Notes under the pieces: model-generated
Database searches by the model: none
What the model was told of the DNA's origin: nothing
Seen by the model: the letters and a program-made list of their open reading frames with translations, nothing else
From: Blastocladiella emersonii ATCC 22665
Lineage: Eukaryota; Fungi; Blastocladiomycota
Reading direction: 5' to 3'
Length of the DNA: 64,000 nucleotides
NCBI GenBank assembly: GCA_025594325.1
Contig: JANHCV010000018.1
Coordinates: forward strand, 1-64,000
Shown: in pieces, positions 8,346 to 27,887 of the stretch
How positions within the stretch are numbered: position 1 is the stretch's first letter
Layout: each line of letters opens with the position of its first letter
Position numbers and translations under genes: made by a program

Positions 8346-10772
8346 TCAAGACGACGCCGTGACCGCGCTTGGTGGGAGCGTGTTGGCGGCCGCCGCGGGC
8401 GACGCCACGGAGCTCCACGCGCCCGGGTCCGAGTCGGGGGCGGCAGCGAGCGCGTCTGCTGGTGGTGGCCGCAACCGGGGCTCGGTGGACGCGGACGTGA
8501 GCACGCCGCCGTTCGCACCGTCGCCATTGGGTAACACCGGACCGCTGCCGCCGCCGCCGCCCGTGAGCCCGCCGAGCGGGAGGATCGCCATCTGCGATGT
8601 GCCGAAGCAGACGGCCATGCGGTCGCCCGTGCGGTTGTACCGCAGGTCGAGAATGTCGTTGTACCCGTAGAAGGTGCACACGAGCTCGGCCGAGCTCGTC
8701 CACACGTACAGGTACTGGTCGTCGGACCCGCACGCCAGGTACCGCCCGTCCGGGCTGAACGTGAGCACGCAGTGCGTCTGCACGAACCGGTCCAGCGAGT
8801 ACACGCACGTCGCCGTGGCCACGTCCCATATCCGCACCGTCTTGTCGGCGCCGACCCTACATCCCATGAGTGCGTCAGTGAGGACTCTCGGGAAACTCAG
8901 TCATGAACCAAAAGACGCGTACGTGGCGAGCTGCGACGCTCCGCTCGGTGGCCTTGGGTTCCACGCCATGGCGAGCACCTCGCGCTCGTGCCCTTGCAGC
9001 ACCGCCGTGGCCTCGGTGCGCGACGCGGACCAGATGCGCACCGTCCCGTCGTCCGAGCAGCTGGCCAGGTGCTGCTTGCTCGGGTCCCACGCCACCACGT
9101 TGACGTCTCCCGAGTGCCCGCGCAGCTCGCGCGCCGAGCCGGACTCGACGTCAATGAGCCGGACGAGGTGGTCCGAGGACCCGACCGCGAGCGTCGACTT
9201 GCCGTCCCAGTCGAACGCCATGATCGCTACAAGGGAGAGCGCGGCGAGTCAGAACCGGTTCTCATTCGCAGTATCCACGCGAATCGTAGCGTACCAGCGC
9301 CGGGGCACGCGAGCGAGTACTTGGACGTGTCGTTGCGCACGTCCCACACGAGGACCGTGCCCTGCGTCGAGCCGACCGCGAGCAGGCCCGAGTCGGCGCT
9401 GAACGCGAGCTCGAGCACCGCGTTGACGCTGGACTCGGGCGTGCGACGCGACGGCGATGCTGGCGGGACCGTGAACGTGAGGACGAGGTCGCCCGCCTTG
9501 GTGAAAACGCGGACGCGCGCGTCCTTGGTCCCCGTCGCGAGCAGGTCGCCGTTCGGGCTCCAGCCGAGCGCCGTGATCGAGTTGGACGACGACATCCCGT
9601 CCGTTGTTGGCACCGAGGACGACGAGTCCGAGTCGTGCGGAAGCATCACGACGTTGGACAGCCGACCGTTGGTCTGCGGCACGGTCCACAGCCCGACCAT
9701 CGAGTTGAGCGAGCTACCGGGTCAAATTCCCGCGCGCGTTAGCGGGCGAGGACTCGTCGAGGAAGCCGCGGTGAAAGCGTACCCGGAAGCGAGCAGGTTC
9801 TCGTCGGTCGGGTTCCACGCGCTCATGTAGTACCGGGCGTTGGTGCTCTGCAGCGTGATGACGGCCCCCGTCGGCGCGTCGCCGTTGTCGCTCGCGTCGT
9901 CGATCTGGACCTGGACAATCACGTCGTCGACTACTCGGGAGCGCGTGGTCAGCCTCCATGTCTGTTCCATGCATCGCAGCAGTCGTACCCGTCATCTCGT
10001 CGTCTGCCGTGCCGTTCTCAGCGGCGCCGTCCACGTCCATGGCGTCGCCGTCGGCGTGGCTGCTGGAGCGGGCGCGGGCCTCGTCGGACCCCGCGACGTG
10101 GTCGCCGTTGGCGGCCGAGTCCCGGGCGCGGTCCTTGCGCTTGCTCTTCTTGTCCTTTTTCTTGAGCGATTGCGACAGCCCGTTGTCGGCGGCGCCCGGC
10201 TCCTTGGCGAGCGGGACGAGCTCCGACATTTTGCGCTGGCGGCGGGCGCTCGACGACTCGAGCGGGGTGCTGCAGCTGTGCGGCGCGAGGAGCGAGAGCG
10301 TGGCCTCGCACTGGCGCTCGGTTCCGTCCTACACGAGCACGGCGAGGAAGGCCAACGGTTAGGCCCACGGTGCGGGACGGTGGCCGGGCAGAAATTCGTA
10401 CATCTTCCATGTGGATCTCGACCTGCATGAGCTGGAGGGCCTTGTGCAGCAGCGCAATGAGTTGGCCGGGGCGGATCTCGAGCTGGCGGAACTCCTCGAG
10501 CTTGCCCGTGAGCTTGGACTCATGTTCAAAGGCGAACACCGAGTGCCGGAATCCTGGACAGGTGGAAAGAGAGCGCCGCCAGGTCAGGTCCCATCGTCAA
10601 GGTCGGGTCGGAGCGAGCGAGAGGAGAGGTGGAGCAAGCGCGCTCAGGAGAACCCGCTGGCGGCGCTGAGGAGGAGGGGAGTAGACATAGACGGGCAAGT
10701 ACCGGACTCGAGCAGGTAGCGGTAGATCAAATAGTTGACTTCATCGGCCGCGATGGACAGCGGCGGGAACAT
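8346..10772 (-). CDS. SIF2: LisH + WD40 corepressor subunit TBL1/Sif2/Ebi, multi-exon
   Basis: [31 protein letters not shown] LisH, then PGQLIALLHKALQLMQVE and multiple WD40 repeats (SAWNPTDENLLASG, WSPNGDLLATG, VAWDPSKQHLASCSDD, FSPDGRYLACGS). Confidence 0.9.
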
Positions 10773-11417
10773 GGTCGGTCGTGCGTGGCCGCAATGGCAG
10801 GGCGACGCAGACCACCGTGCGCGAGAAAAAGGGCGACTATTGCTGTTGAGGAGGACGCGATGGCTACCGCGAGAGGTTCGGGTGCGCTTGCGGGTGGTGG
10901 GTGGCGGGGCGGTAGCGGTGGGGGCGCCGAGCGAACAGGTTCGAGGTTGAGTCCACGGCGATAGGGCTCACGTCGGAGATAGGTGCGGGAGGCACGGCCA
11001 GGGTGTAGCCACGCGTGTGCAAGGAGGGTTGCGGGGACTTAGCGGGCAAAGATCGAGAGTGGATAGGGCGAGGCGTAGCGTCGGCTGCGGCGAGGTCGGC
11101 GAGGGAGGTGAGCGCGCACGCGGCTGAAGCGACTGCAGCCCAGCCTGCTCGCATCAGGTGACGTGCGCCTCCCGAGTATCACGTAATTTTTCGCGATAGG
11201 GCTCTTGCCGCCGCGGCGCCTGCGAATAGCGCGGAATAGGCTGGCCGTACTGGACGATATGAGACGGAATACGGGAGCAACAACAAGAGACGATACCGTC
11301 ATCAAATTCACGAAACGAGGGCGAGCAGGGGGATGAGCGTAGGGTAGAGCAAGGCGGGGGAGCAGGTACGGGATCGGGCACGCGGCAAACAGAGGACGAG
11401 CCCGGCAGCAAGTTCCC

Positions 11418-11810
11418 TTACTCCTGCTGGCGCATGCGCCACGGCTGCATGCCCTGGAAGCCGTGGTGCTTCAACCGGGCGACGTAGCCCTCGGCGAGGT
11501 GCTTGCAGTTCTCGGGGTGGTTGACGCCCTCGCGCTTGTAGCAGCGCACGAGCTTCTCGCGGATGATGCGGGTCTTCATGATCTCGACCCACTCCTGGCG
11601 CAGGTGCTGGTCGCGCGCCTCGATGACGGCTATCGATGATGACGGCAGGTGGGTTGGGGATCAGCGGTGAGTTCGAGGTCGTTGAGCGGTCCGCGAGCAC
11701 AAAAGCGCCGTACCAATGGGGTCGTTGAGGTCGACATCCTTGTAGGAGGCGACCTTGGCCCACTTGCGGTTCTCGGGGTCGACGGGCATGCGAGCGGTCT
11801 CGGCAGACAT
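11418..11810 (-). CDS. NDUFB10: Complex I accessory subunit NDUFB10 (fungal 12 kDa/PDSW type), 2 exons
   Basis: EARDQHLRQEWVEIMKTRIIREKLVRCYKREGVNHPENCKHLAEGY matches the REQWV...CYxxEGVNHxExC family motif. Confidence 0.88.
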
Positions 11811-12577: not shown

Positions 12578-13451
12578 ATGAGCACGGCCGAGGCACAGCA
12601 GAGCGACATCAAGCGCATGTACCGCATCCACCGGACCATCAACGAGATGATGGCCGATCGCGGCTACCTCGTGCCCGAGGATAGCGCCAACATGACGCTT
12701 GACCAGTTTGCCGCCAAGTTCGCGCCCAGCGGTGAGATCCGGTGAGTATTGCTCGAGCTGCGCGAGCGCCCGCCCGAGTGGAGAGAGCGCGCCTTCGCTG
12801 ACCGCGCCGTCGCACTCGTGTACCCCCGCCTGCAGCCGCGACAGCAACATGGGCCTCATGTTCGTCAAGCCCGGCTCGCAGGACCCCATCATGGTCACCT
12901 TCATTGCCGACGACAACAAGACCCGGATCGGCATTGCCCAGGTTCGCACGTACGTGCCACCCCCAGCGTCAGCTTGTCAGACGGGCTCCGGCTCACGCTT
13001 CCCCTCTCCGTAGCTTCGTCGAGCAGCTCGCCGCCAGTGACATCTCGCGCGGTATCGTCGTGCACAAGCAGCCCCTCGGCCCGCAGGCCCGCGGCATCAT
13101 CAACGTCGCCGCCAACGACCGCTACCGCCTCGAGGCCTTTGAGGAGGCCGAGCTCGTCGTCAACATCACCAAGCACGTGCTGGTCCCCAAGCACGAGGTG
13201 CTCACCGACGAGGAGAAGAAGGTCCTGCTCACTCGCTAGTACGTTTTCGCTTTCTCGAGATTCTTCGCCGAGGCGCACACTCACCCTACTCGACCTCGCC
13301 GTGTAGCCGCCTCAAGGAGACGCAGCTGCCGCGCATCCCCGTCAGCGACCCCGTCGCCCGCTACCTCGGCCTGCGCCGCGGCGAGGTGGTCAAGATCATC
13401 CGTACCTCGGAGACGGCCGGTCGCTACGTCACGTACCGCCTCTGCTTTTAG
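12578..13451 (+). CDS. RPB5: RNA polymerase I/II/III common subunit RPB5, multi-exon
   Basis: [73 protein letters not shown]. Confidence 0.98.
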
Positions 13452-13564
13452 GAAACACGGGTCCACGTTGTATATATATGCTTTTAGTCAAGCATATCGT
13501 ATGCCAGTGCGATTCGTGTATTGAGCGCACCGTGCGTAGCGGGCTAGGTAGGCATCAGGAACAT

Positions 13565-14638
13565 TTACGGGTTCAAATCTGAGCCACCGACCCCGCCGCC
13601 GAGCTCTCGCACGCGCTCCGCGACCATGCCGAGCACCTCCTCGTGCATGGGCGTGGGCACGCCGACCTCGCGGCCCCACCGCACCACCGTCCCGTTGATG
13701 AACGCCAGCTCGTCGGGGCTGCGCCGGTGCGTCCACACGTCGGCGTGCGTCGAGCTCCAGTTGCTCGCCGTGGTCGCACACACCTCGTCGACGAGCGCCA
13801 TGATCGAGTCGCCCGAGGTGAGTGTAGGCGGGAGCAAGCCGCCCGCAAACTCGGACGGGAACCGTGCCGCACGGGCGACGAACACGGCGGCCGTTTCGGC
13901 GGCGAGCTCGGCGACCACCTTGCGCCACGCCGGGATCGTCACGACCGCACCGTTCCGCACGTCGGCCGCCGCCGTCGCCGCATTGATGCTCGCGTTCACG
14001 GCGAGCTTGGTGAGCAGCAGGCTTTGCATCGACGCCGCGCCTTCGGTCCCGCCCGGGTACGCCGTGGCATCGGGAAGGTCGCCGAGCACGTCGAGGAGCG
14101 CGGCGGCTTGTGGCGTCAGCGGTTCTGCGGAAGCGGGTCCAAAGTGCCATGCGCCACTGCCGGCGTGAACAATGTGTCGCCATGCACTCACGGCCGACGA
14201 CGACGTGTCGCGGAAGCAGCCGTGCGTCGTGGACCCGAGCAAGATGGGGAGCTCGCCCAAAACACTCGGAGACGTCTCGTCGATGAGTGGGATGTGCCGC
14301 CCGTAGCCGTTCTGGATCAGTGCGAGCGCCGTGTGGCCCGGCACGTAGGCGCTGCCGAGCGACTTGAGGGCTGATGTGAGCTGGTGCGCCTTGGTGGCGA
14401 CGATGACGGCGTCGAGCGGGTCTGCTGGGGGAAGCTCGGCCGCCGTCGTTACATTCACGGGCAGCGACGTTGTCGGTGCGTCGGGTGCAACTCCATGCTG
14501 GACCACAAGCTTCGGCGGCTGGATGGACGAGGAAGTAGTGCGCTCGAGAAAGGTAACGGCGGTCCCGCGGGCGAGAAGCTGCGAGCCCAGCAGACAGCCA
14601 ATGTTCCCGGCGCCGATGATGTGTAGCCTGCTCAGCAT
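13565..14638 (-). CDS. PAN5: 2-dehydropantoate 2-reductase (PanE/ApbA family), single exon
   Basis: IIGAGNIG Rossmann motif, VATKAHQ, LIQNG, KLAVNASINA (catalytic Lys), SSTHAD and ELAFING (catalytic Glu). Confidence 0.92.
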   Translation of the reverse strand: MLSRLHIIGAGNIGCLLGSQLLARGTAVTFLERTTSSSIQPPKLVVQHGVAPDAPTTSLPVNVTTAAELPPADPLDAVIVATKAHQLTSALKSLGSAYVPGHTALALIQNGYGRHIPLIDETSPSVLGELPILLGSTTHGCFRDTSSSAVSAWRHIVHAGSGAWHFGPASAEPLTPQAAALLDVLGDLPDATAYPGGTEGAASMQSLLLTKLAVNASINAATAAADVRNGAVVTIPAWRKVVAELAAETAAVFVARAARFPSEFAGGLLPPTLTSGDSIMALVDEVCATTASNWSSTHADVWTHRRSPDELAFINGTVVRWGREVGVPTPMHEEVLGMVAERVRELGGGVGGSDLNP

Positions 14639-14716
14639 AGTTTCGGCAAGAAGTTCTCAAGTTACATGGGATACGTGTTGTGAGGGCAGGGAGAGGGGAT
14701 CAACGGCGGCCTCGCT

Positions 14717-14771
14717 CGAGCCTTGACGGCGAAGCGGACGTCGGCCATCACGCGAGTGGCGGAGCACGTCT
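14717..14771. promoter_or_regulatory. Conserved core of the duplicated bidirectional promoter (left copy)
   Basis: CGAGCCTTGACGGCGAAGCGGA + 7 nt + CATCACGCGAGTGGCGGAGCACGTCT, identical to 25118-25172 apart from the spacer. Confidence 0.7.
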
Positions 14772-14832
14772 TCACTTCACCTCGACTGATACGCCGATCC
14801 GCTCTCTCTCCCAACGCACCCATAGCAATGCT

Positions 14833-15025
14833 ATGAATCGCAAGGGCAACCTGCCGCTACTTGATGCAAACTACCCGGTCTTTGTATTTGTTCACCGTGG
14901 ATCAAGTTTGGAGAGGAAGCCATGCCCGTTCAGTGGACGCTGATCCGCTCGGTTCGATGTCGGAAACCAGCAGCAGGCTGCTGCACCTTACCAATCGGAC
15001 GACCTTGTATCGCGTCATGGATGAT
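14833..15025 (+). pseudogene. Decayed 5' fragment of the PNK/HAD-like gene at 25210
   Basis: MNRKGNLPLLDANYPVFVF aligns to MDRAQKPPLLDAFDLVFVF, and LLHLTNRTTLYRVMD to FLRRTNLATVHRVVN. There is a 1-nt insertion, the donor is changed GTACGG to GTTTGG, and homology is lost after ~15025. Confidence 0.85.
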
Positions 15026-16848
15026 CGCCCACGTATAGTGTTTCGGTTGACGCTCGGGCAAGTTAGGGCAGGCAAGTCACGGCAGGCATTTACACCTGTG
15101 CAGGAACTCCTAGTCTTCTCGCCCGATGTCTAGCTGCCGATACCGTGTTTGAGGATCCTTTGTGTTTGAAGTAGCTTCTTGGTTCTCAGTTGCCGGCTCT
15201 TGATCACAACCCTCTCGGCGACGACTGCACTGGCCTACTCGAGAGTCCGTGAGGATATTGAGTGACCGCAGCTACTCGATCCGCAGCGAGCAAGTCATCG
15301 CATTCCGGGCGATGGCGCGGCGGACCATGCTTCGTCCCTCGTGCCCCAATTACAAGCAACGAGGGTCGTCCCCACCTCCTCCGCACCGCGAACCGGTCAT
15401 CATTGGTAGTTAGTCTCCTGCCACTTATGCTCAGCGCCTTCGTGGCCAGTGTGGCGACTCGCCGCAGCTGTCGACCGTCGGCTGCGGAGCGCGAAGCGAG
15501 GAAAGCTCATTCGCTATACGTTCGGCGAAACTGGCGGAACTGACGCTCAAACATCCTCGGGAGCTCGTCCCTGTCGCGGTTTCTTGCTTTGAGGGAGTCG
15601 TGATCGACGCGCGCTCATTCCTCATTTAAACCGGTCACCACTGCCGACCGATTCCGTCCAAGGGAAGCCGGTAGCTGCTCTGATGCCGGGCTGACAGGTT
15701 GGCCTTCGATACGCGTCGGTCTTGCGCACGTGATTGAGCAACGCGTCCCTCGCGTTGCTGTTTGTCCCTCGAAGCGCGATCTCCATCGCGGGAGACGCGT
15801 CCTCCAGGAGAAGCCCTGAGAGCAGGCACAGCGCCTCGGACGCACATCCCGGCGATGGGGACCACCGTGAGTGCAATGCGACGCGCGCGCCTCGACGACC
15901 TTCGCGCTCTCCCTCTTCCTCTCACGGCTGCCAGAATCGACTGTCTGATCATTACGCTACGCAGAGCATATGAAGTCCTATAACGATGTCATGAGTGGTG
16001 AATGGCTGCCCGCCGAGAAGTCCTATCAGGTCACTCGCTGGCCACGGAGCGCGAAAACTCAAGCTGCTGGGCTCCGTCGCGTCGTGGGCAACAACGGGCT
16101 CGAGCAACTCCCGTGCTGGCCAGGGCAGCGACAACACCCGCTTCGGAGAGAGTCAAGTTTCATGGACCTTGTTTGAACTGGCCAGGATGCCCTCGCAGGC
16201 TCCTGACTTGACCGAACCCTGTTGTCATGGCCTGAGACACGGGCAACCACCGCCCGCCGTGCCGCTTGGACCTTGCCGTATGCTTCTCTGAACACGACCT
16301 CCTCACGCCGACTGCAACCCCGGATGGCCTCGGGTGGCCCTTATCAGCGCGTCGCGAAAAAGGCGTGGGCCGAAACCCGCTCGGACGCAGCTGGAGGGGA
16401 GGAACAGCAGCGGAGCGAGGGACCGCCAGCAGCTCCGCGCGGGCCCGAGGTGGCGTCGGAAAATTCCGGGTAAGCGCGTGGCGCAACGCGTCTCCCGAAT
16501 TACACGCGACATCAGGTGATTTGCCGCAGCGTCTCGCAGCGCGTCTCGCACCGCGCGCGGGACGCGTTCCGGTTCGCGGCACCTCACCCGCTCGCTTGCC
16601 GCCGCCAAGGCCGCGCCTTGCTTGTTGCAATGCAGTTGCTGGCGCCGCACCACACGCGTCGCGGACACTAAGGTGCCCGCCGCCCGGCCTCCCCTCCCCT
16701 CCCCTCCCTCCCCTCCCTCCCGCTCTGCCCCGGCCGGTGCTCGCTTTCTTCGCCGCTGCACCGCTTCGCAAGGCACCTCAACGCGTTTGATTGCGAATAC
16801 GAATCGAACGATATCCCTGCCCGAAACCCCCCAAACCCGACCATCGCC

Positions 16849-19428
16849 ATGAACGCCTTCCAGCGCTTCATCGCGGTACTCTTCGCCGCCCTGTGCATGG
16901 CCGCCGGCGCCACGGCCCTGCTCGCCGCCGTCCGCGCGCTCTTCGCCGGCAACACGGCCGCCGCCGCCGTGACCATCGCGGCTACGGCCGCCACGTTCGT
17001 CGTCGACATGGCCACCAACGTCACGTCGGTTGCGACCTCGGCTGCCGTCTCGGCCTACTCGGCCATCCCCGTCCCCGTCGCCCTCGTGCCCGCTGCTGCT
17101 GCTGCTTCCGCCGAGACTACGGCGGTGGCCGTCGCGACCAAGCTCGCCGTCCCGACCCTCGCCCAGCTCGCGCCGTTTGTCGCGATGCGTACGTTTCTCT
17201 ATCCCCTCTACCCGAAGCCTCGACACCCGAGTCCTGGCCCGCCGCGTCGCCTGCCGCCAAGCTCGGGCGCGGCGGTGGTGCTGCCGCGACGCGTCGCGAC
17301 GCGTCGGGCGGGAGACACGGCGTCTCGACGCGACCGCTCGCCCCCATCGTCCCCACATCCACGAACTCGACACTGATACCATCCGTTCGCCTCGTAGACT
17401 TTGTCGGGATCGAGTACATTGGCGCGTACGGCGCGCTTCTCCTCGCCAAGGCGACGAGCATCCTCGGCGGCCGCCCGCAGTCCTCGCTGCTCGCGCTCCC
17501 GGCTCCGCCGGCGGCCATCGAGGCCAAGTCGGCGACCGCCGACATCTCGATTGGCAAGTGGTGGCAGGACACCACCGTCCACTACTCGGCGTTCAACTCG
17601 ACGGACGCGACCCGCCCGATCTCGAGCCGCCGTGACTTGAGCTCCGCCTTCGGCTCGTTCGTCACCCGCAAGACCCGCTACCCGGCGCTCAAGGCCCACG
17701 TCCATCTCGGCTTCGGCGAGATCGCCAAGCCCTTCCTCGTGTCCAACGTCACGATTGAGGCCAAGCCCGCCGTCTCCGGTGCTCGCCAGATTCAGGCGCT
17801 GCCCACGGCCGTTGCTGCCCATCACGTGGAGCAGCAACTCGCGTTCCCGACCATGCCCATCTGCAAGTCGGCGGCCACGACCACAACCTCGTTCACGTCG
17901 GCCATGATCTCTCGCGCCACCCACGCGGCCAGCTCGCTCATCGTGTCGGGCCCACTCATCGACATCCCCGTCGCCCGCCGCCACTCGCACACCCAGCCCA
18001 AGATCTACGCCGACGCGTTCACGCTGATCGGCTCCCACGCCCGCGAGCTCGAGCTCGAGCTCGCGACCCACGCGCTCGCCGTCCCCGAGCCGCTACGGGT
18101 CAAGGTCCCCTCCAACATCCCCCAGAAGGTGACGATCTCGGCCGCGCCCGTGTGCAAGTTCACGTCGGCGACCCCGCTCGGGACCATCCCGACCTGCCGT
18201 GCCGCCCACTCGGCTCGCTCGCTCATCGTCGCCGGCCCGCTCATCGACGCCCAGGTCGACGTCGTCCAGTACTACCCGTCCGCAGCGGCTTTCTACCACG
18301 ACGCTGCCGCGAGCTTTCTCGCGAACGAGTTCTTCCAGCGCAACGTCGAGTCGCCCGTATCCAATGTGGCTGAGATGCAGCTCGCGTTCCCCGTCGTCGC
18401 CAAGCAGCAGCCGGCCACGATCCTGACCGCGCCCATCTGCAAGTCCGAGGTCTACACGCCGCTCGTCATCTCCACCTCGACGTGCCGGGCGAGCCACGCG
18501 GCCCGCTCGATCATGGTCGTGTCCGCCTCGGCCATGGTTACCGACGTCGAAAGGTACCCGGGCGACGCGCAGCTCGGTCTCATTATCGCCCTGTGCCTCG
18601 TCTTCCTGCTCGATCGCCTCCTCCGCTTCCTGGCGCCCCGCAACCAGCCGTCGACGGCCGTCTACCGCAAGATTGACCGCATGACCAAGGGTACGTGGTC
18701 CCAACCGATCTCTCCTCTGAGCCGGTTCACTGACCTGCTGCGCCCGTGTAGACGCGATCCGCGCGCTCAACCTGACGCCGGACCCGTGGGGCCAGATCAA
18801 GCACTTTGCCGACGTATTCGTGCCGAGCCCTGCGCGCTCGGCCTTTGACTTTGCCGGCCCGCGCCGCGGCCTCGACATCCTGGACCGCGCCAGTCTCGCC
18901 AGCCCCGCAGCCGTGTACTACGCCGACTTTTTCGACGGCGCCTCGGTCCTGGCCATCAGCGGATACGTCTACCGCGCGGGCGCAAGCAGCTCCCTGGCCA
19001 TCTCGTCGCCGTCCCGGCACGCTGCCGACATCCACATCATCGACTCGGGCTCGAGCTCGCCGGCCGCCGTCTGCCCTCACACCCCGATCCGCTCATCCTC
19101 ATCGTCGGCTTCAGTTTTCGGCTCGGCGTGCAGCACGCCGTTCCCGACGCCGCGTAACCTCAACTCGGTGACGCCGACGCGCTCTTCCAACGGCGCCAAG
19201 ACCCCGTCGGCCGCCGCGTGCGAGCGCTTCAACGCTTTCATGATGGACCAGGTCACCCCGTGCAAGACGCCGATCCGCCGCGCGTTCCGCGTCCTCGCCG
19301 ACGGCCGCCGCGTGTACCAGCGCGTCGCCTTCACGGCCATCCTGCCGCCCCGCAACCAGTCGCCCATCGCCGACTCGGAGCGCGGTCGCAAGCCGGCCCG
19401 CGGCCGCCGTCCGGCTGCCCGCTGCTGA
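16849..19428 (+). CDS. Orphan membrane protein (~770 aa, 3 exons: 16849-17187, 17398-18691, 18752-19428 approx.) with three internal Cys/His repeats
   Basis: Strong GC3 bias; two GTACGT...TAG introns join the frames without stops; hydrophobic N-terminus and a TM segment LGLIIALCLVFLL; no recognisable family. Confidence 0.72.
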
Positions 19429-19699
19429 GCGACAACTTCCTCGTTTGACATTTATTTCACGTACTCGACTCGCGCCGGTACGCTGCCAGTGGCTGACTAC
19501 TCTCAGAGGAGACGCTTCAACTCACGAACACTTTGTCCTCGACTCCAGATTTCGGCCCGCTGTCTCCTTTGTCGTTCACGTTCATCATCATCACCACCAC
19601 ATCCGCGAAACTACAAAACCAACAACTTCAACCGCTCGCAGCTCCGCGCTGCCGCACCTGGCCTCGTGCTGCGGGCCATCACGGCCACGCCGCGTGCTG

Positions 19700-20533
19700 G
19701 GCGTCGCCTACGATTTCAGTCCATGGTCACGCTGCCCTCGGGCTGATCGAGCTCGCCGTCTCGATCGTGTCGTACCTGCGCTGCGTCGTACGAGTACGGC
19801 CTAGCCCGACGTTGACGCGCGCGCATACGCCGCGTCGCATCTCGTCTACGTGCGCCGCTGTTCCGGCGTGCAGTCTCCGTCGCCGCTCGCCATGATCCAG
19901 CCCGAGCCGCCGACTCGCAGGCCATGTACGGCCTCGCTCAAGCGCCCGTGCGCGCATGTCCTCGGCCGGCCAGTACGACTCGACGGCCAACCTCAACAAC
20001 GTCCACGACCCACTGGTACGGACGGCATCGGTGCATTGCCCACTCGCTCCCATGGCCTCGACCCCCGTACATCCGTACTTTTGGTGGGTCGGGCGAGAGC
20101 GGCGGATCCGTGGACGCCGCCAACGCTCTCGGAGTGGCCCCGAACGTCGCACGTTCACATGCACCGATGCCGATCCAGTGGGAAGATTGTCGTCGGTCTC
20201 GCGCGCCATCCAGCCCCGAGCGCGCCGACTACCTCGACGATCCTCGCCGCCACGCTCAACTTTGGCGGCGGCACCTACACGCTCACGCTCATGGCCAGGT
20301 CGACCGACAGCCCGACACCGCGAGAGATCGTCTCGCAGCTCATGTCCCGGCCTCGACTTCCTCGCGCCACGCGTACTCGGGTTCGCGCACCACTAGGGCT
20401 ACCAGTACCGGCAGTACCACCGGTACCAGCTCCTTCAAGAGTCGCGACCCGCCACACCACACCGAGATCCAGGCCTCTCGGTACGGATCTCGCGCTGCTG
20501 CTGCTGCTTGCCTCGATGGACACGGCCAGCTGA
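19700..20533 (+). pseudogene. Probable decayed orphan gene
   Basis: Coding-like GC3-rich patches fall in different frames (GLIELAVSIVSYL; MSSAGQYDSTANLNNVHDP; TILAATLNFGGGTYTLTLMAR). An intron-like segment from ~19786 ends in TAC rather than TAG. Confidence 0.4.
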
Positions 20534-20971
20534 CTCGTCGCGTCGCGTCACCCTTGTAGAGTGCATTCCGCACCTCGACGCCCGTGACTTGTTCTTTTGA
20601 TTTTCGACCCATCCGCGGCCGCACCCGGTTCCACCACATCACCCACCCACGGTACACGGCAACCGGCCGGCCTGCCACGTCGCGGCGCGCTCCCGCGTCC
20701 CCATGCAGATCATCATGGCCACGCACGCGTCTTCCCGCCACGACTGACTATTGACTCGGTCGACTTGATCAACCTGACCGAGCGAGCCCCCGCGCCGACT
20801 CGCCTCAGGCGTCGACTATCGCCCCGCGAGTTCTCAACCGCGCGCTTTTCTCAAGGCGCCGGCATCCGCTTCTCCACGTTCACGCTCATGTTCACGTCCA
20901 TCTCGCTCGTCGAGACCGCGCCCAGCACCCGCGCACTACCACGACGGTCATGGCCACGTTCACGTCTTTCT

Positions 20972-22036
20972 ATGGACGCGTCCCGCAGCCGCGACGACCT
21001 GTCGCCGCTTGGCCACGACCGGCCACCCACCCCCAGTCCGCCGCACCTGCTCGCCACCTCGTTCCTCGGCCAGTACCAGTACTTGTACTCGTACCAAGAG
21101 CAGATCGGCGGCTCTCGTCCATTTACCCAGATCATCGCGCCGGACGACGCGCTCACGCCCCCGCACGCTTCCTCTCGTGTCGACCACCCAGCGTCGCACG
21201 CTCGAGATTGCGTCCCGCTGCCCGCTGGCGCAGCCGCACTCGCGCCCCTTCCCGAGTCGGCCGGCCCGCCGGGCGCCGCCACCGGTCCTTTTTCTCGCAC
21301 GTCCTTGTCAGCCAGGCTCGCTGGCAAGACGGGCGACATCACCGGTCGCGCGATACGACCACTACCACCACCCGGTCACGATCCCGATCCCGCGCGCGAG
21401 TCGACGACGACAGCAGCAGCACTGCCACGACCCGCGGTTCGCACGCTCATCGCCTCCTCGCACCCCGATCATATCGCGGGATCCATACACGCCGCGCGGC
21501 GGCCCCACGTTTGCTGCCGCTGCCGTCGCGACCGCCATGGCCGCCATCGAGTACCACCGAGCTCGCGCCAGATCACGCAGCTCGACTCGATCGCCCCACC
21601 ACCACCAACTACCAGCACCTCCGGCACGCGCGGGTTCGACGGCTTCCGCGCGAGACCACGCCCTGACGGGCAAGGGACGGTGAGGAAGAAGGGTCCGGGT
21701 TGCCGTGTCGCCTGCACCCCGCAGGCCGACGGGCGCCCGCTCTCACGCTTCCTCGCTGTCCCGGTCTCGCAACGTCGCTGTCACCGACCACAGCGACCCG
21801 CGCACCGGCGTGCCCGACCGGCTCTACCGCGTGGACCGAGGCGCGGCGACGCACCCGACCCTTTTCTGCGTCGCCGCCACTCCCTCCTCGGTCCCGACCC
21901 TCAAGCAGCTCGCGCGAGAGGAAGACCTCGAGAGCTCCCAGTCCGAGTTCTCGAGGACTTTTCCTCGCCCCAGCTGTACGCGGTCCAGCCTGTCACGGTT
22001 AGCTACGACGTCCCGACATCCGCCGTCGCGCGCTGA
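20972..22036 (+). pseudogene. Orphan ORF carrying apparent compensating frameshifts
   Basis: GC3-rich start (MDASRSRDD...SFLGQYQYLYSYQEQ) and end (LEDFSSPQLYAVQPV). Internally the GC3-rich frame switches (AAAAVATAMAAIEYH ~21510-21560; VTDHSDPRTGVPDRLYRV...LKQLAREEDLES ~21770-21950). Confidence 0.5.
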
Positions 22037-22721
22037 GAGGCCGCAGCGAGCACGACCCCAACACGCTCGTGCCGCGGCCTGCTCCTCAAGTCAAGTCAAG
22101 CGCGCCGCGACGGCGGTTCCCTCGGCACGTCGCCTCGGGTAGCGGGTACCGCACTTGCTCGCGCGCGTGTGTGTGGGTGGTTCACTCGAGCCGCTCGCCG
22201 CCGCCGCGAGCATCTCGCGCGTGCTACTGCCCGAGGACCCCCGCCATCCAGGTCCAGTCGCAGGCTGCCACCGCCGGCAGCCTTGACGGCTCACCTAGGA
22301 GGGCACCACCACCACCACCACCATCGGCTCATCGACACTTTGACCACGGTGAGCGGCCAGCAGAGCGTGTTGCGGGCCAATAGCGCCCGGCATGCACAGC
22401 GGCCGCGAGTATTCCGGTTCGACCACGGCGGCCCTTGCAGCGCGTTCCCTCGCGGGGGCGCCGCGGCCGCCGTCCACACGGGTCCCCTTCCGCCGACAGC
22501 CGCGCCAAGGAGCGTGGCCCCACCGCCGCGCCGCTCGCCAAGAGTGCGAGTGTGTGTCGCGGCGGTGCGACCGAGCGGATCGCGACCGGGGTCGGACCGG
22601 TGCCTCAGCGCCGCACACCACGATGGCCTCTTAGAGGTCGCATTCGGGCGTGCGGGCGAGGCAAGAAGAAAGTCCCGCGTTTGATGCGCGAGCGTGCGTG
22701 GCCCGGTGTCGCGCCTGGCCC

Positions 22722-23263
22722 GTGAGTGGTCGGTGCTGCGAACCGGTTGACCCGCGCTCTGCTGCACGCGCGGGGCACAAGTCCAGTGGGCTCGGCCGCG
22801 CGCGATGCGTACGTCCTCGTCACTTTGGCGCGTATCGACGATTGATCTCCGAGACTAACTCGCGCGCGTGTGTCTGTTCCGTGTAGGCCCGGCCCAGCCC
22901 CTGGCCCCTCGCGCGCAAGGCGCGAGGTGGTTAGCCGCAGAGACCGCGCGCCGTGTTGAGGTGCGCGTAGCGGCAGAGCCCGCCCCGCGCAGTAGGCGTA
23001 CGTCTCCTCCTGCTCCTCGGCCTCCCTCGCGTGATCCCGTTGACTGACTCGTTCGCGCACGCATCGTGTAGGCCGGAGGCCGGTTCTCGGCGACTCTCGC
23101 TCAGGCGAGGTTGGCCAGCCGCGCGATGTCCGTGCGTGTCCCAAGGGGTACGCGTGGTCGCGACGGCGTCGACTCCGACCCGCACACGCTGTGTATGTTC
23201 TCCCTCTGTGCCTTGGCTCACGCATCGTTGGTCCGTTGACTGACCTGATCCGCGCGTGTGTAG
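22722..23263 (+). other. Chain of canonical spliceosomal introns (22809-22886, 22998-23071, 23193-23263; possibly 22722-22781) with no coherent ORF
   Basis: GTACGT/GTATGT donors, GACTAAC or TTGACTGAC branch sites, GTGTAG acceptors. Confidence 0.7.
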
Positions 23264-23642
23264 GCCGGTCGGTCCATCAACACTCAAGCATTGACAACCC
23301 CAAGCACCGACAACTTCAACTTCGACACCTTCGAGCTCAACACCCTCGACACTCAACCTGCCCGGTCAGCGCGCCTGCCTCGTCAACATCACCCTCACTC
23401 CCCACCCACCCCACCCCACCCCATCCGCACCCGCACCACCACTGGCACCGGCACCGGCACCACTTCGAGCTCGACTGCAACTGCATCCTCGCTTCCGCAA
23501 ATTCAACCACTGCACCACCACCACAACAGCTCGAGTGCAAGAACGACATCATCATCATCATCAACACCGTGCCGGTGCTGGGCGCGCTGACCGAGGACCG
23601 TGCCGCTAGGTTCCGCGACCTTACTCATCCCCTCCCTCCTTC

Positions 23643-23675
23643 CCTCTCCAAAGTTACCCTCTCCAAAGTTACCCT
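23643..23675. repeat. 15-bp tandem repeat CCTCTCCAAAGTTAC x2.2
   Basis: Read directly from the sequence. Confidence 0.9.
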
Positions 23676-24199
23676 TCCCATTCATTCGCACTCAACTCCT
23701 TTTCACTCGTTCCCCCTCGACCCTCCTTTGCTCGTGCTCGTTCTCCTTCGATTCCCATCTCTCCCCTCTCCGCTCGCCCGTGTATTGGTTTTCGTGTTTT
23801 TGACTTGTTCCATGGAATGGTACTGGAGCCATTGTGGCGCTCCCTTTTGGACTTCACGACTTCATTGCCCGCAGCAGCGAGACTTGTCGAGTACTGAGGG
23901 CAGGAGTAGCGAAGACGCGTCGCGCCACACGCGCGTCCCTGAAACACTCACCGGTCTCTTCTCCTCACCGACACCAAGCGTCCCCGTCAAGATCAAGTGG
24001 TAACCTAGTCTTCACCGGAAGCGGAGTACCTTCTGGGTCTTGGGCGATCACCAGACTGTCGCTTCTCTGCGCTACTCTCAGCCGGCCCGTGGAGCTCATT
24101 CCTGCCTCTCGTAACACGCTTGCACTGAAAGGGAAACGAACAGAGTCGTCGTGAGAAGCGTGTATATACCATCCGGCGCAGCCCAGCATGATCAGAACC

Positions 24200-24866
24200 T
24201 CAGGCAAAGCTGAACAAGGTCATCTCGTGCGGCAGGTGCGAGCCGTTGACCGTGGTCACGGTCACGGACTGGCCGTCGGCGCTCGTCGTGGTCTGGCTCG
24301 ATATCGACCGCCAGTTGCCGTGCACGGTGCTGCTCCTGCCGCCGCTAAACGTGGCCGAGTGGTCGATCAACGTCTCCTGAGCGGGACCGGCGGAAGCGTC
24401 GTCGCCGAACCCGGAACCGAGCGCGAACACGTCGCCGTGGTTGCCCAAGAAGGAGGAGGAGGAAGAGGTGCGTCCGTGCCGCCCGTGGCGGTGGGCCAGC
24501 AGGCGTCGTGCGCGTTGCCGTGCCAGGCGCCGTATCCGCTGGCGTGGTCGTGGGTCGGGAATGAGGACGACGCCTCGTGGTACGAGTAGCCCATCGGGGG
24601 CCATCCCGCGTGGTTACTGCTGAAGGTGGTGGACCCATGGGCGTCAAACTGGTCGTTTTGGCGGTGATCGACGGGCACGCCGTTGACGAGGGTCGTGGTG
24701 TGGGACTCGCCGTTGGGCAGCGTTGTGGTCGACGTCCACATGGACGAGGAAGAAGACGTGGCGGAGACCGAGAAGGCGGCAGCGGGAACAGGTGCGACAT
24801 CACCGTGCAACTGCTGCTGTGACTGGGCCAGCCGTGACTGGAGCTGCGAGTGGAGCTGCGCAGCGT
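24200..24866 (-). pseudogene. 5'-truncated, frameshifted Ser/Thr/His-rich gene body with two TTTxxxG..TxVNG motifs
   Basis: MWTSTTTLPNGESHTTTLVNG and ISSQTTTSADGQSVTVTTVNG lie in different frames. One missing C near 24505 (CAC GAC GC CTG CTG GCC) would join them. Confidence 0.6.
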
Positions 24867-24871
24867 ACGGG

Positions 24872-25048
24872 TTAATATGTCGTCGGTGCTTCGGGCGTGA
24901 CTCCCTCCTGGACCACGGGTATTGCTGGTTGGGCGGGGTAGGAAGCGGCGCGATCGACGAAGGTGACGGCCGCTCCGCGAGCGGCGAGCTGCGAGTCCAG
25001 CAGGCAGCCAATGCTTCCGGCGCCGATGACGTGCAGCCTGCGCAACAT
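24872..25048 (-). pseudogene. Truncated paralog of the ketopantoate reductase 5' end (58 codons, then TAA)
   Basis: MLRRLHVIGAGSIGCLLDSQLAARGAAVTF...VVQEGVTPEAPTTY* versus intact MLSRLHIIGAGNIGCLLGSQLLARGTAVTF...VVQHGVAPDAPTTSL. Confidence 0.92.
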
Positions 25049-25117
25049 AGTTTAGCAAGTCTGATCAAGTTACATGAAGCCCGAGCTGCAAGGAGGGAGA
25101 AGACATGACGGCGGCCC

Positions 25118-25172
25118 CGAGCCTTGACGGCGAAGCGGAGGCCGAGCATCACGCGAGTGGCGGAGCACGTCT
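25118..25172. promoter_or_regulatory. Conserved core of the duplicated bidirectional promoter (right copy)
   Basis: 22-bp and 26-bp blocks identical to 14717-14771. Confidence 0.7.
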
Positions 25173-25209
25173 CGTTCGGTCCGCCCTCTCCAAACTCTCT
25201 CATGCAACC

Positions 25210-27887
25210 ATGGATCGCGCGCAGAAACCGCCGCTACTCGATGCATTCGACCTAGTCTTTGTGTTTTCCTACCCGGGTCAAGTACGGAGCGCCCTCCGCC
25301 CACGCCCGCGTGCCCTCGCTGATCGGCTTGCCCGGCGATAGAACACAGAAGCGTTCCTGCGCCGCACCAACCTGGCGACGGTGCACCGCGTCGTCAACGT
25401 CTACGAGGAGTGTGCTGGCCGCTCGCTGCGCCAGATCGCCGCCCTAGTCCATGCTCGGCTCGTCGACGTACGTGCCGCTTCCGCTCACCACAGCGAACGA
25501 TCGAGCTGACCCGTGTCCGACGCTGTAGCGTAACCGCCTGGTCCTCATCTTCCCAACGCCCGGACAGGGCGTCGTCGCCAACTACCTGTCCGCGCTGCGG
25601 CGGCTCGGGTCCGCGAAGCTCGGCCCGACGCGTGTTGCGGCGGTCCGGCCGGTGATCCCCGACTCGCTGTTCGTGCCGTGGGCCGTGGAGTGGGCGCGCG
25701 CGGGAACGCTCGACGGCGAGCCACGGCTCGCCACGGCTTTCGCCATGGACCCGGTCCCGTGGATCGAGCTGGCGTCCGGGATGCTGCCCGTGGCGGGCGA
25801 GGACGACGACGAGGCAGTCACGCTCGTGCGCCCGACGGCGATGCTCGAGGCGCCCGGCGGGAAGTCGGCGTTCACCATGTCGGTACTTGATTCCCCGCTG
25901 TCTCGGCCGATGCGATCTCGAGCTGACCTGTTACTCTGCACAGGCTCTGATCCTCGACGGCTCGGACGTATTCGTGGGCAAGCAGCTCACTATCGACGAC
26001 CGGTTCCTCGTGCCGACACAGCTATGGTGCGCCGAGTCGACGGCGCACGGCGGGCGCGTGATCGTGACGTGGAACGTCAAGGCGCGTCCGATCCCGGCGT
26101 TCATGGTGCAGCACGCGGCGACCAAGCTGTCGGCGGCGCTCGGCAACGTGCCCGTGTACGTGCTCGTGGTGGCGACCCCACCCGCCGTCCACGCCGCCGC
26201 TGTCCCCACCGCACTCGCCGCCGCACCGGGCGCGACACCAGCTCCCGACCCGCTCATCTTTGTTCCGTCGGGCCAGCTCGCGTGGCTGCAGCGGCGGCAC
26301 CGGCTCGCGCTGCACCGCACGCTGTTCGTGTCGTCGGCGCTCATGCAGCCGTGGATCCGCCGCGTCGAGCCGGTGCGGTGGGCGCAGGTCGCGACCAAGA
26401 ACCAGCTGCGCCGGCTCGTCGAGACGCTCGACGACGGGCGCGCCGCGATCCCGGCGTGGACTGCCGGGGTGGTCGACTCGAGCGAGGTCAAGTTTGGGCT
26501 CAAGAGGTACGCTTACTCTCGCCTGCCACGATAGACGATTCGACTGACGCGCTGTGCCAGTAGCTCCCCGCTGTACCTCCCGCTGTACCGCGACGACGGC
26601 AACGTGGCGGCGATGAAAGAGGACGCGGACGCGCTGTGCGTCTTCCACTCGCTGCACTGCCCGGACGCGGCGGCGCTCAAGGCGTGGCACAAGCAGCTGA
26701 CCGAGGCCGCCGAGCGCGCCATCCTGTACCGCCCGCGGCGCCCCGACGACATTGGCCTGTACGGCGCCGGGTCGCAGTCGCAATCCCAGTCTCAGTCGCA
26801 GTCGCAGTCGACGCAGGTCCAATCCCAGTCGCAATCGCAGTCCCAGTCGGCGTACAACAACGCCAACACGCAGTTCGACACGCAGGTCGACAACCCGCCC
26901 GAAGACCGGCTCGTTCTGGGCGACGACGAAGATGAGGATGACGACGACGAATCGCCCGTCGCCCCGCCGCCCTCGAGCCAGTCTTCGCAGCGCAAGCTCC
27001 CGTTCTCGTCGCAGGCGAGCACCGCGTCGCGCAAGAGCGGCGGCGGCGGCGGCGGGTCGCCTCCCCCGCGCCGCCTCATGTCGCGGCCCAGCAACACCAC
27101 GGCGGCAGCCCCCGCAGCCCCGCGCACCCTACCGCCCGCCGTGACGCCGAAACAGCCCTCCTCCGCGCGCGCGCCCGCGTCCACGCCGGCAACGGGCTCG
27201 CCGCCGTCCCCGCCGCCCAAACCGGCAGCCAAGCAGCGGCGCGCGCGCAAGTCCAAGACCGACAGCCAGGAGGCGGCGGCCATTTTCTTGCCGCCCAAGA
27301 GCGACGACGAGGACGAGCCGCGGCTGCGCCGGCACACGGGCGAGGGCGGCGGCGCGCGCAAGCGGCAGCGGACCGAGGAGTATGGCGCCGGTGCCGGGAG
27401 CAAGGGGCTCGAGTCGGTCGACCTGCTGCGGTTCGTCGCGCCGGCGCCGCCGAGTTTGAGCTTGAGCGGGTTCGTCCCGCCGACGCCGAGCGCGGGCGGC
27501 GGGTTGATCGCGCCGACGCCGAGCGCCAGCGGATCGGTCGTGGCGACACCAAGTTCGAGCGGGTCCGTCGCGGCACCGTCGAGTGCCAGCGCGTCGCTCA
27601 CGACAACGCCGAGCGCCAGCCGGTCAGCTGCGCCGTCGCCGAGCGTAGTAGCCCGGCCCCCGTCGGCAGCAGCGGGGATCCCGATCCAGCGGGTGAGCGC
27701 GACCACGAGCGCGGCCGTGTCGGGTTCGGATACCGACACGGACACGGACGACGGTGGGGCGGTACCCGCGCCGAGACCTACGCCGTCGACTGTGGTCCGG
27801 CCGCTGTTCTCCCTGTCGGCGATCATGACGCAGGTGGCGGCGGCGGGCGATGGAGGCGGCGAACTCTCGGGCTCGGACACGGAGTGA
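25210..27887 (+). CDS. Degenerate polynucleotide-kinase-like + HAD-IIIA-phosphatase-like protein with SQ/TQ cluster and disordered tail (5 exons)
   Basis: Introns at 25282-25341, 25468-25528, ~25883-25943 and ~26508-26572 give a continuous ORF. The gene itself is well supported; the domain call is a by-eye alignment to PNKP/T4 PNK/GmhB motifs. Confidence 0.65.

Follow-up and report, generated by a model that had tools for sequence, protein, structure and literature searches.

A divergent promoter duplicated and divided between its two genes around a patchwork interval in Blastocladiella emersonii

In duplication-degeneration-complementation, a segment is present as two diverged copies, each of which holds a different intact gene, and the redundant halves are pseudogene fragments. 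The same arrangement is found in DNA of the water fungus Blastocladiella emersonii ATCC 22665 (assembly GCA_025594325.1), in the first 64 kb of the 213-kb contig JANHCV010000018.1 (contig 18), the stretch that we call the window. Here, a PanE/ApbA-family ketopantoate reductase gene (PanE) and a divergently oriented partner gene share a promoter block that is present twice, with a 10-kb interval between the copies. Unlike in the classical case, the unit consists of a divergent promoter and two gene 5′ ends and not of whole genes, and what appears to have been partitioned is ownership of the promoter, not gene subfunctions. The locus also resembles the patchworks produced by fork stalling and template switching or microhomology-mediated break-induced replication (FoSTeS/MMBIR) and by nonhomologous end joining (NHEJ): there is a duplication around composite DNA from other loci, the junctions are blunt or near-blunt and contain no filler, the breakpoints lie within genes, and the same site was hit repeatedly. 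It differs from them in that the mechanism is here read from the structure alone, with no pattern of junction microhomology established. To our knowledge, no FoSTeS/MMBIR/NHEJ-type process has been described in Blastocladiomycota.

A third parallel is offered by Pack-MULEs and Helitrons, since unrelated gene fragments (the 5′ end of an MLH1-type gene, a PanE relic that we call PanE′ and a gene of the repeat itself) are fused beside a dispersed repeat, R5, which supplies half of the interval. However, R5 has none of the features of these elements, i.e., terminal inverted repeats (TIRs), 5′-TC...CTRR-3′ termini, a 3′ hairpin, a target-site duplication (TSD), a transposase or a Rep-helicase. Taken as a whole, the locus shows segmental duplication followed by reciprocal gene loss, and this structure lies nested within a later segmental duplication or conversion. 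It is mildly unusual in a single respect, namely that what was partitioned is a bidirectional promoter together with the heads of two genes, and it reveals no new mechanism. Its value lies in providing a clean natural example in which a duplicated bidirectional promoter came to be split between its two genes, and in recording, layer by layer, the build-up of segmental duplications, fragmentary genes and chimeric gene models in one fungal region.

The promoter block and its two genes

The promoter block is ~550 bp long and occurs twice in direct orientation, the copies being ~75–80% identical. The left copy (14469–15016) comprises PanE codons 1–57, the promoter (14639–14832) and a dead partner fragment (14833–15016), and the right copy (24879–25392) comprises the PanE′ relic, the promoter (25049–25209) and partner exon 1, intron 1 and the start of exon 2; the intergenic promoter measures 160–190 bp. 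Specifically, positions 14469–14913 align with 24879–25289 at 80% identity over 404 aligned bases (local alignment score of 251 vs a maximum of 33 in 50 shuffles), and a repeat search recovers the pair at offsets 10410 and 10401. On the side of partner exon 2, a weaker extension reaches 15016/25392 with a score of 21, compared with 11.9 ± 1.45 (maximum 18) for the shuffles (z ~6). On the PanE side, homology ends sharply at 14469/24879, and nothing was detectable beyond this point by alignment against shuffles. A first-pass annotation, made by a model from the letters of the window, had proposed a ~550-bp block present twice in direct orientation ~10.4 kb apart, and pairwise alignment and the repeat search uphold it. 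Its reading of a head-to-head PanE/partner pair duplicated around the promoter, with complementary genes kept, holds as well, as does its placing of conserved genes on both sides: housekeeping genes flank the locus on the left (Rpb5, NDUFB10, a WD40 protein and OSBP) and on the right (Dus, Erv1 and GCV_T).

The intact PanE gene (13565–14638, − strand) is intronless and encodes 357 aa with Pfam matches to ApbA (6e-21) and ApbA_C (2.9e-22). Its product equals the annotated protein P0001 (100% identity), and the nearest relative is B. britannica P0002 (44%). In the right block copy, the PanE′ relic (24867–25048, − strand) comprises 60 codons with a stop after codon 58, and the 58-codon open reading frame (ORF; 24872–25048, − strand) matches in Pfam only the N-terminus of ApbA, the dinucleotide-binding part. 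The dead 58-codon PanE fragment noted in the first pass is confirmed. Compared with PanE codons 1–57, the relic shows 75% nucleotide identity, a synonymous divergence (dS) of 0.64 and a nonsynonymous-to-synonymous ratio (dN/dS) of 0.32. Its Rossmann-motif residues are altered (N12S, G18D); with B. britannica as comparison, the residues of the GAGNIGCLLG motif are kept in intact PanE and lost in the relic.

The intact partner (25210–27887, + strand) has five exons (25210–25281, 25342–25467, 25529–25882, 25944–26506 and 26564–27887) and a predicted length of 812 aa. Its open frame is interrupted in the genomic sequence, and removal of four GT..AG introns of 57–61 nt yields an uninterrupted 812-aa ORF; all four have a GTAC-type donor, with CTGAC as branch site and YAG as acceptor. 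The partner had been called intact over 25210–27887; it is intact as a spliced ORF but not as one open frame. The B. emersonii genome has a GC content of 66.6% and short GT..AG introns, and a bacterial-code ORF listing splits real genes because the host is a eukaryote with such introns. The public annotation of the partner covers 25210–27507 (673 aa) and shares the start of the 812-aa model; the conflict between the two models means that the 3′ end of the partner needs transcript evidence. No Pfam domain was found in the partner exons. The last exon contains low-complexity coding sequence at 26773–26862 and 27466–27643, consisting of an SQ-dipeptide run (CAGTCG repeats) and five diverged 30-nt tandem units. 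In the left copy, what remains of the partner (14833–15016) is exon 1, intron 1, whose donor (GTTTGG) is degenerate, and the first 51 nt of exon 2; past 15016, homology is gone.

Two copies that have diverged by 20–25% provide a phylogenetic footprint of the promoter, and this footprint yields a 55-nt core (left, 14717–14771; right, 25118–25172) that is its most conserved part, with 51 of 55 positions identical (93%). At a background identity of 78%, the binomial probability of at least 51 matches in 55 is 0.003 before correction for multiple windows, and the core is confined to the block copies within the window and the fetched loci searched. An ATG at 25105 lies 35 codons upstream of the annotated partner start (25210) and in frame with it, and the extension overlaps the core; the left block copy has no counterpart of this ATG. 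The four core differences hit three codons of the 25105 frame, and all three changes are non-synonymous, so that coding constraint is not indicated. Over the whole block, the copies differ by 74 transitions and 57 transversions, with a moderate AT bias of the left copy (62 vs 38). Erosion resembling repeat-induced point mutation was considered and rejected, since the changes are not almost all C-to-T/G-to-A. On its partner-facing side, the left promoter copy is now directed towards an orphan gene, P0082, which lies on the same strand 1.8 kb downstream and, judging from this layout, may have captured that promoter copy.

The interval, the repeat R5 and the recent copy

The interval between the block copies (15017–24866) shows no homology to its flanks by sensitive blastn (word size 9). 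Its left half, X_L (15017–19983, + strand), begins with a spacer (15017–16848) of ~59% GC without recognisable content, followed by P0082 (H9P43_010149; 16849–19428, + strand; 769 aa), which has coding-type GC at third codon positions (GC3; 0.81–0.89). No homologue of P0082 besides itself was found in a collection of 5.8 billion proteins, and there was no Pfam match and no paralogue beside the contig-8 copies of R5 or in the other fetched loci. The weak matches of X_L to contig-8 paralogues are collinear in blastn only, without P0082 protein similarity, and a relationship between them is unproven. An unfiltered tblastx comparison of the interval with other loci contained compositional noise only and was discarded.

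The right half (19984–24866, − strand) is one copy of R5, a dispersed repeat of ~5.0 kb, from which the first ~125 nt are gone. The window was compared with a paralogous locus further downstream on contig 18 (L004, in which 10001–11636 correspond to record ~78952–80587) and with two loci on contig JANHCV010000008.1 (contig 8; L005 and L006), and the copy counts of R5 and X_L cover these four loci rather than the whole 34-Mb genome. The full R5 unit corresponds to L004 10836–15852 and to L005/L006 9932–14934; there are at least four copies, and window positions 19984–24861 are 85–86% identical to the two contig-8 copies. Because R5 occurs elsewhere without X_L, the interval is made of at least two pieces, i.e., it is a composite in which an orphan-gene segment is joined to a dispersed repeat.

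At its 5′ end, R5 carries a gene of a Q-rich family (252 aa), which is intact on contig 8 (P0081) and represented in the window only by a remnant (24200–24861). A HMMER search of 1.8 billion representatives found two members of the P0081 family only, both from B. emersonii. Most of R5 lacks coding-type GC3 bias. No TIR, long terminal repeat (LTR) or TSD was found, end-to-end comparisons being at noise level, nor were any recognisable protein domain or Helitron-type termini. The two ends of R5 are identical on contigs 18 and 8, a comparison that covers only two or three independent sites, as the contig-8 pair forms the arms of an inverted repeat. In de Bruijn unitigs of short-read runs, which are independent of the assembler though they share its sample, the R5 core has a depth of 400–1000 (3.5–8x single copy) with variant unitigs, as expected of a small repeat family.

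The inverted repeat on contig 8 has 9.6-kb arms (record ~1740954–1750561 and 1761454–1771061) that are 99.7% identical and separated by a 10.9-kb spacer; each arm holds an inositol-trisphosphate kinase gene, a zinc-finger gene, an intact P0081 and a full R5. Identity between the contig-18 and contig-8 copies of R5 is patchy, with 97–99% in a core of ~450 bp (window 22146–22600 vs L005) and 62–90% elsewhere. This pattern points to recurrent short conversion between R5 copies or to constraint on a non-coding core; the ~450-bp core has no Rfam match.

Across 25 interval ORFs and P0080–P0082, Pfam detected no mobile-element domain, the sole match being an MLH1-type HATPase fragment. The Pfam searches and the TIR/LTR tests agree with the first-pass annotation that no transposase, reverse transcriptase (RT) or terminal repeats are visible. 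Its picture of an interval filled with orphan, frameshifted and chimeric genes is right about the orphans and the fragment junctions, but some of the "frameshifts" are introns.

A much younger event overlies the left block copy and nearly all of the interval. Window positions 12802–24517 recur on the same contig in direct orientation, 54,752 bp downstream (record ~67554–79269), with zero differences over 12824–24517 (11,694 bp), and the PanE protein is encoded twice on the contig. The tract begins at 12802 inside the gene for the RNA polymerase subunit Rpb5 (12578–13451, + strand; convergent with PanE; Pfam RNA_pol_Rpb5_N and RNA_pol_Rpb5_C, annotated at L002 11188–12061), of which the downstream locus has the C-terminal domain only (a 156-aa model). 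Beyond this left end, no homology was found between the two loci. To the right of 24517, identity falls to 66–88%, and homology runs on to 24861 and, downstream, through the intact 5′ end of R5. A unitig of run X1 ends exactly at 24517 with a depth of 236.5, and the unitigs that follow have depths of 123–128; the ratio of ~236 to ~126 (~1.9x) indicates roughly two copies per genome of the sequence to the left of 24517 and a real branch point. A near-identical tract at double depth identifies a recent segmental duplication or long-tract conversion. The locus is like such events in having an 11.7-kb identical tract bounded on one side by old homology, but it departs from long-tract conversion at the other end, where Rpb5 is truncated and homology does not continue. 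For the recent tract, a one-ended break-induced copy is a better fit than a classical two-ended conversion.

The right end of the interval is a secondary deletion junction (24866/24867), at which PanE′ nt 182 is joined to R5 nt ~126 without filler. It was located by a three-way comparison of the junction, PanE and the R5 copies, the intact R5 end surviving in three other copies, and short-read unitigs of three runs cross it with 0 differences. Both genes are truncated at this point, which explains the "chimeric pseudogene" seen in the first pass. In the downstream locus, a second PanE′ piece (L004 10398–10832, PanE codons 69–219) stops 3 bp short of the intact R5 end at 10836 and is fused to a 5′ fragment of an MLH1-type gene (its first ~122 codons). 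In both the window and L004, a PanE′ piece immediately precedes the same end of R5 with the same orientation, and in the window less sequence is left on either side of the junction. The most economical interpretation is that the ancestral adjacency, with PanE′ to at least codon 219 and a full R5, may survive downstream and that the window would later have lost ~600 bp.

The downstream PanE′ piece shares 84% of its nucleotides and 69% of its amino acids with PanE, contains frameshifts and a stop, and has a dS of 0.43; dN/dS is 0.3–0.4 for both pieces. Going by dS (0.64 vs 0.43), the two pieces are statistically compatible with a single age. Their common origin is deduced from the fact that both adjoin R5, not from sequence. 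Other PanE-like relics occur in a second, much older duplicated module shared by L004 (2319–6101) and L006 (16854–20137), which comprises ~3 kb at 65–76% identity followed by a relic in each (L006 19586–20137; L004 5808–6101). On contig 8, this module lies ~4.7 kb past the R5 end and is roughly collinear with R5, X_L and PanE of the window. The relics are 52–67% identical to PanE, a divergence too great for them to be placed in the history of the locus, and they may be unrelated old paralogues.

A proposed history and its rivals

We consider it probable that an old local duplication-insertion at the divergent promoter was overprinted by later events at a repair-prone spot. From an ancestral head-to-head arrangement of PanE, promoter and partner, at least 1.2 kb (from PanE codon 219 or beyond to partner exon 2) was duplicated directly, with unrelated DNA coming to lie between the copies. 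That DNA may have arrived in the same event, by template switching or end joining with a return to a site before the point of departure, or by later insertion at the junction. PanE was retained on the left, where the partner was lost; on the right the partner was retained and PanE′ decayed, and each gene now adjoins its own promoter copy. The filler between them is the composite of the orphan-gene segment and R5, which has an orphan gene of its own. The adjacency of PanE′ and R5, present at both loci, was presumably copied 55 kb downstream, and a deletion of ~600 bp in the window would have removed PanE′ nt 183–656 and the first ~125 nt of R5, creating junction 24867/24866; we infer that the copying preceded the deletion. 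Last, and very recently, the 11.7-kb tract, which reaches from the 3′ part of Rpb5 across PanE, the left block and the interval into R5, was copied or converted into the downstream locus. This would have been a one-ended event, primed in R5 homology and closed within Rpb5 at a non-homologous junction. Break repair or replication with template switching or end joining is the likely mechanism, duplication-insertion being a typical product. No transposase, integrase or terminal repeats are involved; the 10-kb interval is patched together from repeat and orphan DNA within a repeatedly re-duplicating region, i.e., ordinary genome change.

Several points weigh against this history. The mechanism of its first step cannot be read from the final map, on which tandem duplication plus insertion, insertion-coupled duplication and circle integration look alike. 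The overall nucleotide divergence of the two PanE′ pieces is unequal (25% vs 16%; z ~2.7), although the synonymous difference is not significant, and the pieces do not overlap (codons 1–60 and 69–219). Their breakpoints at codons 60 and 69 are just ~25 bp apart, which the model has to treat as a coincidence. No outgroup with the pre-duplication arrangement was found, and B. britannica is uninformative: neither its PanE (44% identity) nor its orthologue of the partner's neighbour shows any microsynteny, and the same is true of the flanking genes. Finally, every sequencing run derives from the assembly's own sample.

Among the rivals, an assembly artefact, i.e., a mis-join or duplicated contig ends, is hardly credible. 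The assembly (21 contigs, 34.27 Mb) combines PacBio reads with Illumina polishing, and duplicated contigs were manually removed during the process (PMC9730499); this removal and the letter-identical 11.7-kb copies speak for an artefact. However, the old block copies differ by 20–25%, which rules out assembly collapse, the unitigs of three runs from the assembly's sample cross the right junction without a difference, and in these runs the tract has ~1.9x depth with a graph branch exactly at 24517. The first-pass annotation had likewise thought an artefact unlikely given the divergence between the copies, and the unitigs across the right junction now add to that argument. Its two explanations of the locus fared less well. 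A tandem duplication of the whole 10.4-kb unit, followed by decay of the inner halves, would account for two direct copies 10.4 kb apart, but the interval should then match the 10 kb to the right of 25392 at ~75–80%, and blastn with word size 9 finds nothing; in addition, an unrelated dispersed repeat family makes up half of the interval. We regard this explanation as very improbable, the missing homology between interval and flanks contradicting a decayed 10.4-kb tandem unit. The other explanation was a Campbell-type integration, in which a circle carrying the interval and a block of PanE 5′ end, promoter and partner 5′ end underwent recombination with the block in the chromosome. Such an integration would yield the final map, with direct repeats around an insert unrelated to the conserved flanks. 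The circle would, however, have needed the block joined to the interval beforehand, so the model presupposes the structure that it is meant to explain. Nor does it suit a composite interval whose R5 part occurs elsewhere without X_L, and no integrase or att-like feature was found in the interval ORFs by Pfam or at the R5 ends. Its specific prediction, that ~15025 and ~24866 were once joined, is contradicted, as the present right end is a secondary deletion breakpoint and not an original end of the interval. Circle integration is less parsimonious than duplication-insertion, and we consider it quite unlikely.

A mobile origin deserves separate weighing. R5, or the larger unit made up of R5, X_L and PanE, could be an unrecognised mobile or self-propagating element that carries or captures host fragments in the manner of Pack-MULEs or Helitrons, with the PanE and partner 5′ fragments as cargo. 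The constant R5 ends at independent sites on two contigs, the PanE-derived pieces near R5 or its neighbours at four places, the end-to-end fusion of MLH1 and PanE′ fragments beside R5, and the very recent copying of an R5-bearing 11.7-kb unit all speak for this idea. Yet transposase, helicase, RT and recombinase domains are missing, as are all of the termini and TSDs tested for in R5, and the ends of the recent copy fall within Rpb5 and R5 and not at element ends. Moreover, both block copies are contiguous with native conserved flanks, the remaining PanE-like relics are so diverged (52–67% identity) that they may be unrelated, and a flanking duplication of 0.5–1.2 kb, instead of a few bases, argues against any simple transposon insertion. 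On balance, such an element is unlikely. It is similarly doubtful that R5, possibly with a neighbouring segment, is a new kind of large non-autonomous element or a recombination hotspot of this early-diverging fungus that repeatedly seeds copy-and-paste of 5–12 kb together with adjacent gene ends; if this were true, it would explain why pieces of MLH1, Rpb5, PanE and partner exon 1 lie beside R5 copies of different ages.

Other features of the window and its annotation

Searches of the 64-kb window for tRNA and Rfam matches found none, and a scan for promoters and terminators was empty, although the models used are bacterial and irrelevant to a eukaryotic host. Tandem Repeats Finder returned microsatellites only. 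In the downstream locus, the annotated 256-aa "HATPase_c" protein P0080 (L004 10001–11636) is a chimeric gene model laid over three fragments, which are the MLH1-type 5′ fragment, a short part of the PanE pseudogene that is in frame, and the last part of the R5 gene in a shifted frame. Gene models such as this one make the locus useful for curating the B. emersonii annotation.

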